Origin: Rebecca billardiae RCC1528
Taxonomy: Eukaryota > Protista > Haptophyta
DNA length: 64,000 bases
Assembly (NCBI GenBank): GCA_965240325.2
Contig: OZ251234.1
Coordinates: 124,001 to 188,000 of the forward strand
Direction of reading: 5' to 3'
Shown here: positions 24,147 to 31,410 of the stretch, in pieces
Position numbering within the stretch: position 1 is the first letter of the stretch
Layout: every line of letters starts with the position of its first letter
Position numbers and translations under genes: made by a program
The notes under the pieces: generated by a model
Database searches by the model: none
Told to the model about the DNA's origin: nothing
What the model saw: the letters and a program-made list of their open reading frames with translations, nothing else

Positions 24147-26654
24147 TCAGGCGGCCGCGGCCGAGGCTGCGCGTTGTGCGCCCGCGGGCGGCTCGACGGC
24201 GTAGGGCGACTTGAGCGCTGGCCGCACGTACCCCGGCTCGTGCAGCTCGCGCCCAAGCTTCTCGAACGAGTCCACCTGCGGGCGAGGCGGACAGGACGGC
24301 AGGGGGCGGCGCGCGCGTCAGCCCCGAGGGCGGCCGTGGGCGGCTGGCTGGCTGTGCGCGGGGCGCGGCACCCGGTGCGCGCGGCAGCAGTCCTCCTCAC
24401 CTGGATGATCTGCTCACGCAGAGCCTCCGCCTCGTCAATCACGCGCTGCTCGGCCGCGCTCGGCTCGCGCTTCTCCTTGCGCAGCGCGGACAGCACCCTG
24501 TCCGCCTCAAGGCACTGCGCGCCGGGGTGGGCGCAGCGGGCGGCGCGGTGGGGCAGTGAGCGCACGGCGCGCGCGCGCGCGCGCGCGGGCGGACGGCGAG
24601 GCGGCGCGCGCCCAATTGGCCGGCCGCACCTTGGGCAGGGCCGCGTTGATCATCGCGAGCCTGTCCGCCGGGTCCTTGCTGATGAAGATGTTGGGCGAGA
24701 GCAGGTGGCGCACCGGCGAGTCCGTGGTGAGCAGCTTGGACACCTGCTGCGTGAGCGCGTCCGAGGGCGGCGCGTAGCTCGGGCCGAGCGGGAAGGCGAG
24801 CGCGCGCATCAGCCAGCCGACCGGCCGGACGGGAAAGTTGGCGCAGATGCCGTACAGCTGCTGCTGCGTGTCGTACAGCAGCTCGCGCATCGCGTGGTCG
24901 AGCACCGCCTCGGAGCCCGCGCACTGGTGGTTGCGGTGGTAGTGCAGCATCGCGTACCCCGAGTACAGGTTGCCCAGCACGTCGGCGAACCGCCCCGAGA
25001 GCATCTCTGCGAACTTGAGCTTGCCACCGAGCACGAGTGAGAGGTCCGCCATCGCCGCAAACGCGCGCGCGAGACGGCCGAGCTGCGACTCGTGGTAGGC
25101 GAAGACGTCGGCGTGCGAGCGCGTGCGCGCGAGCGCGGCGAGGAGCGCGCCGGCCGAGTTGTGCGTCGCGTGGCGCACCAGCGCGCCCAGGTGCCTCGCG
25201 AAGCCGCTCGGGTCGTCGCCCTTGTTGATGGCCTCGATCATGCCGAGCAGGTTGGGGTGCGAGCGGTTCAGGCCCTGCCCAAACACGATCAGCGAGCGCG
25301 TGAGGATGTTGGCGCCCTCGACGGTGATGCCGATCGGGATCTGCTGGTACGCGTTGGCCGCGAGGTTCGCCGGCCCCTTGCAGATCCCCGCGCCGCCCAG
25401 CACGTCCATCGCGTTGTTGAGCGTGCTGCGCATGCGGTGCGTGAGCTGCTGCTTCATGATGGCGGAGAGCACGGGCGGCTGCACGTGCGCGTTCAGGATG
25501 CCGTTCATCGTGTACTGGCACGCGTTCATGCGGTACGTGGCGGAGGCGATGGCGGCGAGCGCCTCCTGCACGCCCTCCAGCTCGGCGAGCGGCACCTTGA
25601 ACTGCTTGCGCACGCGCGCGTACGCGCCCACCGCGTTGGCGGAGAGCTGCGCCGCGCCGACCGAGAGCGCGGGCAGCGAGATGCCGCGCCCCTCGGCGAG
25701 GCACTCCATCAGCATGTTCCAGCCGTAGCCCGCGCGCTCCTGCCCGCCGAGCAGGCACTCCATCGGCACGAAGACGTCCTCGCCCGACAGCGGCCCGTTC
25801 ATGAACGCCGTCGACAGCGGGTCGTGCCGCCGCCCGATGTTCAGCCCCGGGTGGTCGCGCTCGAGCAGCGCGATCGTGATCCCCTCGGCGCCCGCGCCCT
25901 TGAGCAGCCCGGACGGGTCCTGCAGGTTGAAGGCGAGGCCGACGACGTGCGCGACGGGGGCGAGCGTGATGTAGCGCTTGTTGAACGTCACGCTCACGCC
26001 GAGCACGCCGTCCTTCTCGCACACCACGCCCACGTCGCGCATGCTCGCCGCGTCCGAGCCGGACGCCGGGCCGGTGAGGCCAAAGCACGGGATGTACTCG
26101 CCGCGCGCGAGCTTGGGCAGGTAGTACGCGCGCTGCGTGTCGGTGCCGTAGCGCATGAGCAGCTCGCCCGGGCCGAGCGAGTTGGGCACCATCACCGTCA
26201 CCGCCGTCGCCGACGAGCGCGTCGAGATCTTCTGCACGATCTGCGAGTGCGCGTGCGCGGAGAAGCCCTTGCCGCCGTACTCCTTCGGGATGATCAGCCC
26301 GAGGAAGCCCTTCTGCTTGATGTAGTCCCACGCGTGCGCGGGCAGGTCCATGTCGCGAACGATCGTGTAGTCGTCCAGCATCTCGCACAGCGCCTCCACC
26401 TCGGTGTCCAGGAACGAGCGCTCCTCCGCCGTCAGCTCGGGCGTGAACCGGCTCAGCTGCTCGACCGACGGCGCGCCCGAGAAGAGGTCGCCGTCGAAGG
26501 AGACGTCGCCCGAGTCGAGCGCGGCGCGCTCGGTGGGCGAGATCTTGGGCATGATCCGCTTCGCGAACTCGTACGCCGGGCGGATGACGATCCCGCGCCG
26601 CGGGGCCGCCCGGCCCAGCCGGCCGCCCAACGCCCGCCGGCCGATGCGCAGCAT
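24147..26654 (-). CDS. fadE: FadE-type long acyl-CoA dehydrogenase with mitochondrial-type presequence; exons 26654-24630, 24514-24401, 24275-24147
   Basis: MPKISPTERAALDSG, VMVPNSLGPGELL, CFGLTGPASGSDAASM, KRYITLAPVA, ECLAEGRGISLP and IGITVEGANILTRSLIVFGQG are FadE-family motifs. N-terminus is Arg-rich (MLRIGRRALGGR). Confidence 0.93.
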
Positions 26655-26979: not shown

Positions 26980-29337
26980 TCACTGGGCGCCGCAGCTCGT
27001 CTGCAGCTCGCGCTCGGGCGGCAGGCTCGCGAGCCGGTGCCGCACCCACGCGCGCGCGCGCGCCTCGACCTTGGCCGCGCCCCCGCCCGCCGCGCGCGCG
27101 TCGCTCAGCAGCGCGCGCAGCGGGCGCGCGAGCTCGTCGGGCGCTAGCACCGCCGCCGCGCCGCCGCCCCCACCGTCCGCATCGAACGGGTGGCGCACCG
27201 CCGCGATGGCTGCCTGGAGCGGCGCGTCCTCCCCCGCCTCCACGGCCTCGGCAATCTCCCGCAGCGCGGCCGTGCGCAGCACGCGCGCAGGCACGGCCGC
27301 GCGCACGCGCGAGACGCGCTCCGCCTCGGCGGCGGCGGCGGCGCTGGGCGCGGCGGGCGCGGCCTCGCCGCTCGCGCCCGCCTCGCACTCGGCCCCGAGC
27401 CCGCCGCCGTCGATCAGCCGCGCGCACGCCGCCGCGTACGCCCGCAGCCACTCAGCCAGCGCCGCCTCCGAGCCAGCGGCCGCGTCGCTGGCGCGCGCTA
27501 CGTGCCACGCGGCGCCGATGATGGCGCCGTCCGCGTCGGCGGCGGCCGCGGCGGGCGCGAGCAGCTCGATGTCGGCGAGCGCGCGCGAGGCGAGCGGGTA
27601 GTCCGCGCCGGACGCCTCGAGCCACTCGTGCCACCCGCGCACCACCGCCTCCGCCATCGCCTCCGCGTCCGCGTCCGCACCCGCCGCGGCCTCGTCCGCG
27701 GCCGGCAGGCCGAGCCGCAGCCGCGCGCGCGCGCTCGCGCATGCGTCGAACGCGGCGTCGAAGCTCTCGAGGGCTCGGCGCGCGCGCTCGGCGGGCAGCC
27801 ACGCGGGCTCGCCCTCCGCGCCGCCCTCCGCGCCGCCCTCCGCGCCCGCGCGCATCCACGCGCGCGCGTCCGCGCCGCGCTCCCCCGCCCCGTCCGGGAG
27901 GCCACCCAGCGAGTCTGCAAGCCGCTCGAGCGCCCAGCGCGCGGCGCGCCGCTGCGAGCCAAACGCGTACCGGCGCTCGGCGTCGATGAGGTTGGGCGCG
28001 AAGGAGGCGTTGTACCGGTCGACGAAGCCGAAGACGTTCAGGTCGATCGTCACGCCGATCAGCGAGAGGTTGTCCGTGTTCATCACGCCGTGCGCAAACC
28101 CCGCCGCCATCCACGCGCCCACCAGCGCGCCCGTGCGCTCGGCGACGCGCGTCAGCAGACACTCGAACGCGCCCAGCCGGCCGAGCGCGGGGTCGGCGGC
28201 GCAGGAGGGCGCGGCGTCGCGCGGCGCGAAGAAGCAGAGCTCGCGCGCGCGCCGCGGCACGCGCAGCCGCTCGAGCGGCACCGAGCGCGCGCTCTCGTCC
28301 CCCGCCGCCTCGAGTCGCGCGAGCACGGCCAGCGCGTGCCGCGCCACGCGCTCCGCGCCCGCGGGCCCCTGCGTGCGCGCGGCGAGCTGCAGGGAGCCGA
28401 AGCGGAGGAAGGAGGGGGCGAGGCGCGCGAGCACGCCGGCGCGCACGCGCGCCGGACGCCCCGTGTACCACTCGTCGCGCACGATCCGATCCTCCTCGCC
28501 CGGCGTCGCGACGAGCGCGAGCGAGCGCGCGCTCGGCACGGCCGCGCCCACCAGCGCAGAGTCAGCAGCGAGCTCTCGCGCGCCGTTCTTCAGAGCGGCG
28601 CGGCCGTCGCCGCGGCGCGAGAAGGGGGTGCGGCCCGCGCCCTTGAGCGAGAGCTCGAGGGGCGGCGCCCCGCGCGCGCCCGCCAGCACGCCGAGCGAGA
28701 TGGCCCGCCCGTCGCCGAGCTGCCCCGCCCACGAGCCGAACTGATGGCCGCCGTAGTTGTGTGCGTACGGCAGCACGCCTGCCGGCAGCGCGCGCCCGCC
28801 GAGCAGCTCGGCGAAGGCCTGGCTCGAGGCGTCGGCGGCGTCGAGGCCGAGGCGCTCGAGCAGCTCCCCCTTACACGCCACGACGCGCACGCCGCGCGAG
28901 CGCGGCGGCGTCGGCCAGACGGGCGCGGCGACGCTCGCGTTGGGCACAGCCTGCGGCCCGAGCAGCTGCGCGCTCACGCCGCCGCGCTCAGCGGTGGGCT
29001 CGGGCAGCGCGTGCACGGCGAGCGCCGCGAGCGGACTCTGCTCGGGTGGGGCCCAGTCGAGATGCGCCTCCAGCCGCGCCATGCCCGTGCCGGCGCTCGT
29101 GCGCAGGTTGTCTGCGCGAGCGTGCAGCGCGGCGCGCGGGTGCTCGGAGCACCCGCCATCGCCACCGACGCCGTCGGCGCACAGCTCGGCCGCGGCGCAG
29201 TCACACCGGCGCGAGCACGTCGGCCCGTACCAGCCAGGGGCGCACGCCCCGTACGCCGGCTGGCAACCCACCGCGCGGAGCACCAGTGCCAACACGCACG
29301 CAGTGGAGGTGGCGGCGAGAAGCGGGCGACCGGCCAT
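26980..29337 (-). CDS. SELENOO: SelO/YdiU-family pseudokinase (AMPylase-like) with N-terminal signal peptide and EGF/laminin-like Cys module
   Basis: PYAHNYGGHQFGSWAGQLGDGRAISLG, LKGAGRTPFSRRGDGRA, FLRFGSLQ, GFAHGVMNTDNLSLIGVTID and C-terminal TSCGAQ. Intronless. An upstream in-frame ATG at 29379 is also possible. Confidence 0.92.
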   Translation of the reverse strand: MAGRPLLAATSTACVLALVLRAVGCQPAYGACAPGWYGPTCSRRCDCAAAELCADGVGGDGGCSEHPRAALHARADNLRTSAGTGMARLEAHLDWAPPEQSPLAALAVHALPEPTAERGGVSAQLLGPQAVPNASVAAPVWPTPPRSRGVRVVACKGELLERLGLDAADASSQAFAELLGGRALPAGVLPYAHNYGGHQFGSWAGQLGDGRAISLGVLAGARGAPPLELSLKGAGRTPFSRRGDGRAALKNGARELAADSALVGAAVPSARSLALVATPGEEDRIVRDEWYTGRPARVRAGVLARLAPSFLRFGSLQLAARTQGPAGAERVARHALAVLARLEAAGDESARSVPLERLRVPRRARELCFFAPRDAAPSCAADPALGRLGAFECLLTRVAERTGALVGAWMAAGFAHGVMNTDNLSLIGVTIDLNVFGFVDRYNASFAPNLIDAERRYAFGSQRRAARWALERLADSLGGLPDGAGERGADARAWMRAGAEGGAEGGAEGEPAWLPAERARRALESFDAAFDACASARARLRLGLPAADEAAAGADADAEAMAEAVVRGWHEWLEASGADYPLASRALADIELLAPAAAAADADGAIIGAAWHVARASDAAAGSEAALAEWLRAYAAACARLIDGGGLGAECEAGASGEAAPAAPSAAAAAEAERVSRVRAAVPARVLRTAALREIAEAVEAGEDAPLQAAIAAVRHPFDADGGGGGAAAVLAPDELARPLRALLSDARAAGGGAAKVEARARAWVRHRLASLPPERELQTSCGAQ

Positions 29338-29799
29338 CGCGCGACTGATATGCGCGATTCCCCTTCCGGGCTCCGGCATCTAGGGGCGCGCCGGCGCCCA
29401 CCGGTGACGATGATCGCGATCTCAAATGACAAATCGAATCTCGCTCCGCGCCAGATCGGCCCGACTCCCAACGGCCGCCCGCGGAGAGCGGCGGAGAGTC
29501 ATCCTCACGACCTCACTCGTACGTACCTACCGTTTTTAAATGAGCAGGCTGGAGGCTGGAGTCGACTCAGTAGTCTGTCCGACGACATACGTACAGAATT
29601 ATTGTCGTACGTAGTCGTCAAACGTGGTGACCGGAATTGTCGTCGGCCGGCACGGCGTAGACGTAGTAGTGCCACGAGGCAGCCACGGGCCGGGGCCGAC
29701 AACTGCCATGCGAGAGACCATGCAACGTGCGCACGAGGACAAGCGTGCGGGGAGGAGGCGGCTCGGGCGCGGCGCCATGAGCGAGCGCGCTCGACGTGC

Positions 29800-31410
29800 T
29801 CAGCACGCGCCCGACGCGATGGTGGTCAGCGCCTCGAGCGACGCGACGCGCGAGGGCGGCGTCAAGCTCACGTTGAAGTCGTCCCACGTGAGGCCGAGCG
29901 CGTTGAGCATTTCGAGCGAGGGCGCACGCGGCACGCGGCACGCGTCCGGCGCCCCCGCAAGGTGCTGCTGCAGCTTTTGCCTCGAGTCGGAGTGCGAGAG
30001 CTGCAGCTGCATCGCCTCAGACGACCGGTTGCGCGGCAGGCTGGCGAGCACGGCGCGCGGCTCGGCGGGCGGCCCGCTCGCCGGCGCGCCAACGTCCGCA
30101 TCGTCCGACTCGCCCTCGTCGCGCATCTCCACCGACGCGGCGGCGGCGGCCTCCGCGCCCGCCTTCTCCGTGATCACGCGGCGCAGGTCGCCGAGGACGG
30201 ACTCGACGAGTCGTTCGCGCCCGTGCTCGCCCAGGCGGCTCATCGCCGGCGTCTGCATCTCCGTGTCCGCGAGGATCATGAGCTGCTGCGCGAGCTCGCA
30301 GATGCGGTCGCGCCGCAGCGCGGGTGCGGACAGCGCGGCCGCGGCGGGCTGGTGCGGGCTGTGCTGCGCGCCGAGCAGCGAGGGGAGCGTGCTCGTCGGC
30401 AGCCCGCCGATCTGCGAGAGGGCCATGTACGGCGCCTGCTGCGCGCCGCCCATCGCGCTGCTCATCGCCATCGACGCCGCCGCCATCGACGACGGTGGCA
30501 TGCCGAGGGTGGCCGTGGCGATGGGGCCGGCGCCGCCGCCGGCGCGGAGGTGGGGCGAGGCGTAGCTGTGGTGGTGGCTCTCGCCGCCCGCGCGCTTGGC
30601 GGCCAGGTGCAGCCCGCTCGCCAGCGGCCCGCCGACGAGCTGCGCCGCGGCCGCCTGCTGCCGCAGCTGCTGCAGCTGCGGGTCGGGCTGCAGCTGCGAG
30701 CCGTACAGCCGCATCGGCCCGGGGCCGGCGCTCTCGACCGCGCCCATGTGCGGCATGCAGGTGGGCACGCCGCCGCTGCCCGCGGCCGCCGCGACGGCCA
30801 TCGGGTGGTGCGACTGCAGCCGGCGGCGCAGCGTGTGGTACCGGTTCTTCACGGCGTGGCCGGTGCGGCCAGGCAGCAGGTTCTTGATCTGGCACCACTT
30901 CTGCGAGCGGCAATAGGGCAGCGAGCGCGCGCGCGGACGCGGGCGGGTGAGACGCCGGGTGCGCGGGCGGATGCGTGCGCGGGCGGGTGTGCGACGTGAC
31001 GCGATGCGGCGCGACGCAACGACGCAAGCGCGCGCCACACGGCGCTCGAACCGCGCCGCGCTCGCAGGCGCGGTGCGCGGTGCGCGCATGCGGCCGCGCA
31101 CCTGGCCCATCACGTGCAGCGCCTGGATGATGATGGCGTCCTCCTCGGGAGTCCAGTCGGTCTTCTTGACGTCGGGCACGAGGTGGTTGTACCACCGCTC
31201 GCGGCACTGCCAGTCTTTGCGCGAGCCCATGTGCGACGCGATCAGCGACCACTGCCGCGCGCCGTACTTTGCCACGACGTCGCGCAGCTGTGCGTCCTCC
31301 TCCGCCGTCCACGTGCGGCGGGAGAAGTGCTTGGTGCGGGACTGCGGGTCCATGTCCGCCGCCGTCGAGTTCTCGGGAGTCAGCATCTCGACGAGCTTGG
31401 GCGACAGCAT
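29800..31410 (-). CDS. R2R3-type Myb transcription factor, copy A; exons 31410(or 31353)-31102, 30900-29800
   Basis: WTAEEDAQLRDVVAKYGARQWSLIASHMGSRKDWQCRERWYNHL / WTPEEDAIIIQALHVMGQ|KWCQIKNLLPGRTGHAVKNRYH. Intron 31101-30901. Confidence 0.9.
   Translation of the reverse strand: MLSPKLVEMLTPENSTAADMDPQSRTKHFSRRTWTAEEDAQLRDVVAKYGARQWSLIASHMGSRKDWQCRERWYNHLVPDVKKTDWTPEEDAIIIQALHVMGQVRGRMRAPRTAPASAARFERRVARACVVASRRIASRRTPARARIRPRTRRLTRPRPRARSLPYCRSQKWCQIKNLLPGRTGHAVKNRYHTLRRRLQSHHPMAVAAAAGSGGVPTCMPHMGAVESAGPGPMRLYGSQLQPDPQLQQLRQQAAAAQLVGGPLASGLHLAAKRAGGESHHHSYASPHLRAGGGAGPIATATLGMPPSSMAAASMAMSSAMGGAQQAPYMALSQIGGLPTSTLPSLLGAQHSPHQPAAAALSAPALRRDRICELAQQLMILADTEMQTPAMSRLGEHGRERLVESVLGDLRRVITEKAGAEAAAAASVEMRDEGESDDADVGAPASGPPAEPRAVLASLPRNRSSEAMQLQLSHSDSRQKLQQHLAGAPDACRVPRAPSLEMLNALGLTWDDFNVSLTPPSRVASLEALTTIASGAC

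Follow-up and report, generated by a model that had tools for sequence, protein, structure and literature searches.

To our knowledge, the characterized enzymes of the SelO/YdiU family are all cytosolic in bacteria or mitochondrial in eukaryotes, and FICD, an unrelated Fic enzyme, is the only known secretory-pathway AMPylase, that is, an enzyme transferring adenosine monophosphate (AMP) to proteins. Here, we analyzed a window of 64,000 nucleotides from the haptophyte Rebecca billardiae RCC1528 (contig OZ251234.1, positions 124,001 to 188,000), in which a SelO gene at 26980..29379 encodes a hydrophobic leader, a cysteine-rich module, and a SelO domain. All coordinates are positions in this window, and all features of the gene lie on the minus strand. 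The product is probably a soluble SelO-type nucleotidyl transferase, acting with AMP or uridine monophosphate (UMP), that would enter the secretory pathway; both its activity and its localization are predicted.

The window protein has its counterparts in several described systems. Bacterial YdiU/SelO enzymes (Escherichia coli, 6K20/6III/9JYM; Pseudomonas syringae, 6EAC) share with it the fold, the nucleotide, metal, and acceptor residues, and a Cys near the C-terminus, but they are cytosolic and lack the leader, the epidermal growth factor (EGF)-like module, the 75-residue N-terminal extension, the C382/C393 insertion, and C407/C547. They also carry DYGP and a C-S-S end where the window protein has DLNV and C-G-A-Q. 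Canonical eukaryotic SelO (human SELENOO, yeast Fmp40) resembles it in Pfam family, catalytic residues, and eukaryotic host, yet is mitochondrial (PMC3281104), has DYG and [C/U]xx ends, and belongs to a clade separate from the DLNV group; in our trees, this type is represented by trematode, Mesostigma, and Pedinophyceae proteins. Metazoan SELO2 is comparable as a second SelO paralog in eukaryotes that does not use selenocysteine (Sec), but its Cxx end, DYG, and metazoan range do not fit the DLNV group, from which the published description sets it apart (PMC3281104). Dudkiewicz et al. 2012 (PMC3281104) described SELO proteins as ending in Cxx or Uxx, defined metazoan SELO2 with a Cxx end, and dismissed three multidomain SELO cases as annotation artifacts, whereas Mariotti et al. 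2012 applied the name "SelO2" to a zebrafish Sec duplicate. The strings DLNV and TSCGxQ were not found in the supplements of Dudkiewicz et al. 2012. Our literature search found no paper joining selenoprotein O, signal peptide, and EGF-like, nor any application of "secreted AMPylase" or "extracellular AMPylation" to SelO, and the clade appears to be undescribed in the literature searched. FICD/HYPE is a functional analog, in that it AMPylates protein within the secretory pathway, but it has the unrelated Fic fold, is a type II membrane protein, and has a known substrate, BiP.

A word-index search returned no protein identical to the one from the window and found instead 25–30 clusters of 700–860 residues, relatives that cover ~95% of the query at 35–53% identity. 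The best homologs reach 95–96% coverage, including the N-terminal part, at 47–53% identity. The closest named relative is KAG8468406.1 from the haptophyte Diacronema lutheri; other named members come from Picozoa, the dinoflagellates Polykrikos kofoidii, Durusdinium, and Symbiodinium, the diplonemid Namystynia karyoxenos, and the ichthyosporean Sphaeroforma arctica, and the remaining ones are marine or environmental contigs. Because the leader, the Cys module, DLN, and the tail are conserved across the group, the N-terminal features are no accident of this open reading frame (ORF). An exhaustive profile search yielded 9210 SelO-family representatives, ~25 of them at the level of the subfamily. 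Every subfamily-level representative reaching the relevant positions carries DLNV, and every one with a complete C-terminus has TSCGxQ; no metazoan protein was among these matches. A feature search of the ESM Atlas returned generic SelO clusters only.

We then placed the subfamily in three trees, all unrooted: an IQ-TREE of 69 rows, a FastTree of 149 rows, and an IQ-TREE under LG+C20 of 63 rows. In the 149-row and 63-row trees, the subfamily occupies one side of a branch with a support of 100 (Shimodaira–Hasegawa-like approximate likelihood ratio test, SH-aLRT), and in the 69-row tree the 100-supported branch also holds one mislabeled fragment (P0194). The opposite side contains bacterial-type YdiU in all three trees, joined in the 149- and 63-row trees by the group that holds the red alga Cyanidiococcus and by canonical eukaryotic SelO (including a trematode "SelO, mitochondrial", Mesostigma, and a pedinophyte). 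The window protein, Diacronema, and two environmental sequences cluster together (support 95–99). The DLNV group is a distinct SelO clade; being unrooted, the trees do not separate an ancient clade from one spread by transfer. A first-pass annotation of this DNA had proposed a lumenal or extracellular SelO subfamily and a phylogeny of algal SelO paralogs with the DLN variant. In our trees, the DLN/DMN proteins form a distinct clade (SH-aLRT 100), and the proposed subfamily is supported by the clade together with a leader in 22/22 members, the EGF-like module, DLN/DMN, four extra Cys, and TSCGxQ, its localization being a prediction.

The gene itself is a single-exon, uninterrupted ORF (26980..29379) of 799 residues followed by a TGA stop. 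Since a TAG lies in frame directly 5′ of the first ATG (29379), the exon has no possible upstream extension. The ATG at 29337 (Met15), with G at −3 and +4, stands in a better Kozak context than that at 29379, and the leader starting from it matches those of the relatives in being short; this ATG is the probable true start, and the hydrophobic core is identical whichever of the two is used. The first-pass annotation had likewise begun the gene at 29337, a choice that the Kozak context and leader length favor, and had described a leader and the Cys module CAPGWYGPTC...GGC fused in one exon to a SelO domain with KGAG (K246), HGVMNTDN (430–437), and IDLN (445–448). Every one of these elements proved to be present in its place.

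The DNA around the gene has a G+C content of 74–83%. Between 25092 and 31000, both strands contain very long overlapping ORFs in several frames (e.g., 27190–30999 on the plus strand, 1269 residues), which have no homology support and are by-products of the ~75–80% G+C. As long overlapping ORFs are usual in such G+C-rich DNA, we placed the weight of the argument on homology rather than on ORF length. This bears on the idea that the N-terminal part lies outside the protein and that a downstream start gives an ordinary cytosolic or mitochondrial SelO. High-GC DNA does yield long spurious ORF extensions, and the gene is known from genomic DNA; however, the N-terminal 160 residues are conserved in ~20 relatives with invariant Cys and Gly, recur in transcriptome-derived ORFs, and include a stretch (residues 81–130) modeled at a predicted local distance difference test score (pLDDT) >90, which suggests ordered structure. 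The transcriptome ORF of Polykrikos is complete and joins the leader, the Cys module, and the SelO domain in a single mRNA, while that of Namystynia retains part of the module and is truncated at the N-terminus; Sphaeroforma has the same architecture in its genome annotation. That non-photosynthetic Sphaeroforma and the Polykrikos and Namystynia transcriptome ORFs share this architecture speaks against both a wrongly called start and a plastid leader, and we consider a downstream start very unlikely.

The leader, LLAATSTACVLALVLRAVG, corresponds to residues 20–38 and forms most of a predicted cleavable signal peptide spanning residues 15–38 (29266..29337), identified by hydrophobicity and the −3/−1 heuristic. 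Read from Met15, it opens with a short charged n-region (MAGRP); a hydrophobic core of 15 residues follows, and the site A-V-G|C fits the −3/−1 rule. As a measure we used Hmax9, the best 9-residue Kyte–Doolittle mean in the stretch before the Cys module. It is 2.8 for the window leader and at least 2.0 in 22/22 subfamily leaders, compared with 0/138 mostly bacterial SelO N-termini, so that by this heuristic the leader is conserved across the subfamily. A scan of the whole protein found no hydrophobic 19-mers elsewhere, and neither a KDEL/HDEL signal nor a glycosylphosphatidylinositol (GPI)-like tail is present at the C-terminus, which ends in TSCGAQ.

Signal-like leaders also occur outside the clade. 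Hydrophobic N-terminal stretches are present in 15 of 111 more diverse DYG-type SelO representatives, and ~5 of them resemble true signal peptides; we therefore dropped the notion that the leader is unique to the DLNV clade. The proteins P0251, P0257, P0265, P0270, and P0290 are canonical DYG SelO with signal-peptide-like N-termini and no EGF module; all except P0270 end in C-S-S. Secretory routing of SelO may have arisen more than once. The signal-like leaders of DYG-type SelO agree with Dudkiewicz et al. 2012 (PMC3281104), in which some eukaryotic SELO proteins were predicted to be secretory.

The leader could alternatively be the first half of a bipartite leader, with the protein ending in the complex plastid or the periplastidial space. 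The taxonomic range offers some ground for this, in that the named relatives include dinoflagellates and, as the closest, a haptophyte, both lineages having plastids routed through the endoplasmic reticulum (ER). The conserved Cys module, however, begins 5–10 residues past the hydrophobic core, a spacing too short for a transit peptide. The architecture also extends to Sphaeroforma and a diplonemid, both from non-photosynthetic lineages that have no plastid, and to Picozoa, which are reported to be without plastids. Bipartite plastid leaders typically have an aromatic residue after the cleavage site, whereas the residue after the likely site here is Cys, and a disulfide-rich EGF module would be atypical of the stroma. 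With no transit-peptide-length spacer and with plastid-free lineages sharing the architecture, a plastid or periplastid destination is unlikely, and we give it little weight beside entry into the secretory pathway proper.

The module that follows the leader has six Cys (C46, C55, C59, C61, C67, and C77) within residues 46–77 (29149..29244). Five of the six are invariant in an alignment of 18 rows and all six in a module alignment of 21 rows, in which C5, C14, C18, C20, C26, and C36 as well as G11, G29, G32, and G34 (module numbering) are invariant. The consensus reads Y-T-A-C-x-P-G-x-[YF]-G-x-x-C-x3-C-x-C-x5-C-D-D-G-x2-G-x-G-x-C, and many members have two additional Cys within the module. In the PDB, a profile of the 21 modules matched human SCARF1 in its EGF repeats (E = 3e-5) and Tie2 in EGF3 (E = 2.9e-4), and the alignments are convincing. 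The whole-protein Pfam scan gave no EGF model at E values up to 1, the EGF matches coming only from the module profile or from single-module scans; in the latter, EGF_STAB1-2 matched 10/21 modules, all below the gathering score (best E = 1.3e-4; 15.1 bits against a cut-off of 27 for the window module). Folded alone with AlphaFold2, the module gave two small hairpins at pLDDT 88. Foldseek of this model returned EGF proteins in 23/24 rows, with SCARF1 and Tie2 first (root-mean-square deviation 2.5–3.1 Å), all at E > 1 and not significant, and a structural search against all representatives (VIA) gave four chains at Z ≥ 2 (2.4–3.0), all of them EGF proteins. The module is accepted here as EGF-like by its sequence pattern and probable fold, and we claim no particular Pfam family for it. 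The EGF repeats of SCARF1/SREC-I, Tie2, and stabilin/MEGF proteins share its motif C-x-P-G-x-[YFW]-G-x-x-C-x3-C-x-C and Cys spacing, but the window module is single, N-terminal on an enzyme, and found in protists. It is followed by a subfamily-specific, structured N-terminal extension of ~75 residues (28915..29148), common to the relatives, with helices at 81–94 and 100–106 predicted at pLDDT >90 by AlphaFold2, which leads into the SelO core.

The kinase-like SelO/YdiU domain covers residues 168–650 (27430..28878) and was recognized by Pfam SelO (PF02696) at E = 1.7e-70 and 238.5 bits, against a gathering cut-off of 22.8. The curated bacterial YdiU/SelO models of NCBIfam scored below their cut-offs (302 against 431, 192 against 850, and 188 against 900 bits). 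The solved relatives in the PDB are bacterial YdiU/SelO only (E = 5e-50). An AlphaFold2 model built on an alignment of 18 relatives had a mean pLDDT of 83 and a predicted template modeling score (pTM) of 0.86, and Foldseek matched it to 6EAC, 6K20, and 9JYM with target-normalized template modeling (TM) scores of 0.81–0.83 and E values of 1e-21 to 1e-22. The Pfam match and the fold together bear out the identity of the SelO domain. Within the model, an Ala/Gly/Glu-rich insert at residues 497–522 (27814..27891) is predicted to be disordered. An in-frame 12-nucleotide tandem repeat at 27808–27846 encodes (G)AEGG three times (residues ~510–522) and sits in this loop, where pLDDT is ~41–43 over residues 501–520.

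In E. coli YdiU, the nucleotide, metal, and acceptor residues are Y71, Q75, F76, R87, K107, R116, D119, G120, E130, R170, R177, N244, D246, N247, and D256 (bioRxiv 10.1101/692707), and the P. syringae equivalents of the catalytic residues are given in a review (PMC8097203). Pairwise alignment to the YdiU structures assigned each a counterpart in the window protein: Y209, Q213, F214, R225, K246, R255, D258, G259, E269, R319, R326, N434, D436, N437, and D446. Neither the relatives nor 45 other sampled SelO proteins vary at any of these 15 positions. The Lys–Glu pair, the Arg cluster, the Asp and Gly for the flipped nucleotide, the Asn and Asp metal ligands, and the Asp base are all kept. K246 of KGAG (28642..28644) corresponds to the phosphate-binding K107 and has E269 as its partner; in HGVMNTDN (residues 430–437, 28069..28092), N434, D436, and N437 correspond to N244, D246, and N247, the proposed catalytic base and metal ligand. 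The domain looks catalytically competent on these grounds.

The subfamily hallmark is D446-L-N-V (28033..28044) instead of D-Y-G-P; of the four residues, the metal-binding Asp alone is retained. All subfamily members have D[LM]NV, whereas DYG is present in 151/154 and 116/135 other SelO proteins in two samples. Apart from the Asp, the window protein thus departs from the DYG/DFG motif of the family, which was called strictly conserved in SELO homologs (Dudkiewicz et al. 2012, PMC3281104). An altered metal or nucleotide preference arising from this change, as raised in the first-pass annotation, is speculation. PDB entries 9JYM/9JYN/9L29, released in 2026, contain YdiU with nicotinamide adenine dinucleotide and Mn2+ bound, so the nucleotide repertoire of the YdiU family is wider than adenosine and uridine triphosphate (ATP and UTP). 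Four further Cys are invariant in the subfamily: C382 (28234..28236) and C393 (28201..28203), both subfamily-only and within a subfamily-specific insertion; C407 (28159..28161), also subfamily-only, with A/R/E in other SelO; and C547 (27739..27741), where other SelO proteins mostly have A/E/G. A potential N-glycosylation sequon, N147-A-S149 (28933..28941), is N-A-S/T in relatives; a sequon stands at this position in 14/21 subfamily members compared with 1/45 other SelO proteins, which have G-A-C/L there. We also considered the activation-loop Cys of E. coli and P. syringae as a loss in the subfamily and dropped it, as most sampled bacterial YdiU likewise have Pro there.

The C-terminus (26980..27000) reads T-S-C-G-A-Q followed by the TGA stop. 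It is the Cys form, with both Ser of the usual C-S-S end missing; TSCG[AG]Q is common to the subfamily, while other SelO proteins end in C-S-S. The [Cys/Sec]-x-x ending of the family does not apply here, because the end is C-G-A-Q (Cxxx), although C796 aligns with the Cys of C-S-S ends. E. coli YdiU self-AMPylates at its C-terminal Ser-Ser and thereby inhibits its own UMPylation (bioRxiv 10.1101/692707). With this self-AMPylation site lost, regulation likely differs from that of canonical SelO. Given that SelO is a selenoprotein family and that the stop is TGA, the codon at 26980–26982 might be read as Sec, which would lengthen the tail in the manner of canonical Sec-type SelO. Two relatives, however, have TAA after the same Gln, the sequences past the TGA are unrelated among relatives and contain stops, and the Sec/Cys position of other SelO proteins is already occupied by C796. 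On these grounds we rejected a hidden selenocysteine, which is exceedingly improbable.

The changes in the loop and tail also raise a small but real chance that the protein is a catalytically dead pseudoenzyme of the secretory pathway, which would only bind nucleotide or partners. Fam20A, the pseudoenzyme partner of Fam20C, would be a model for such a protein. Fam20C/Fam20A and VLK likewise have a kinase-like fold brought into the ER/Golgi by a leader and family-specific disulfide patterns, but they belong to another kinase-like family, whether as phosphotransferases or as pseudokinases, and have no EGF module. A dead enzyme would be in keeping with D-L-N in place of the DYG reported as strictly conserved in SELO, with scores under the NCBIfam YdiU cut-offs, and with the absence of the two C-terminal Ser that serve as self-modification sites. 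Such a protein would nevertheless not be expected to keep all 15 nucleotide, metal, and acceptor residues invariant throughout a clade that has diverged deeply, and the metal-binding Asp is retained.

The next gene downstream, at 24507–26654 on the minus strand, encodes a long FadE-type acyl-CoA dehydrogenase in one exon (NCBIfam PRK09463, 845 bits), a bacterial-style FadE in an alga. In contrast to the SelO leader, its N-terminus (MLRIGRRALGGRLGR...) is Arg-rich, of mitochondrial type, and non-hydrophobic (Hmax9 0.77). Comparison with the Diacronema locus revealed no synteny, and a sigma-70 promoter and terminator scan of the DNA is irrelevant to a eukaryote.

Taken as a nucleotidyl transferase of the secretory pathway, the protein would have its leader cleaved in the ER near G38|C39, and its EGF module and extra Cys pairs would form disulfides there, three of them predicted within the module and the others between C382 and C393 and between C407 and C547, or in some different pairing of these four. 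The mature enzyme, which lacks a KDEL/HDEL signal, a GPI-like tail, and any further hydrophobic segment, may act in the ER/Golgi lumen, in a vacuole, or outside the cell, and would there transfer a nucleoside monophosphate (NMP) from the corresponding triphosphate (NTP) to Ser/Thr/Tyr/His residues of proteins that are lumenal or secreted. Several points weigh against this reading. Haptophyte complex plastids are reached through the ER, so having a signal peptide is not enough to settle where the protein ends up, and the leader itself was assessed by hydrophobicity and the −3/−1 heuristic only. Activity cannot be assumed, since the DYG described as strictly conserved in SELO is altered. The EGF assignment lies below the Pfam gathering scores, with low Z values (2.4–3.0) in the fold matches owing to the small size of the module, and the disulfides of the module and of the extra Cys pairs are predictions. 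Finally, the gene is known here from genomic sequence alone.

More tentatively, the clade may represent an old, dedicated lumenal or extracellular protein-NMPylating enzyme of marine protists from several supergroups, and thus a second, kinase-fold family of secretory AMPylases beside Fic/FICD. Its DLNV loop and lost Ser-Ser tail might then confer a nucleotide or metal preference (e.g., UTP or another nucleotide together with Mn2+) and a mode of regulation that differ from those of mitochondrial and bacterial SelO. A conserved secreted-type SelO clade with an intact active site predicts the nucleotidylation of lumenal or extracellular proteins in protists, and it supplies natural variants of two elements, the DYG metal loop and the regulatory tail.

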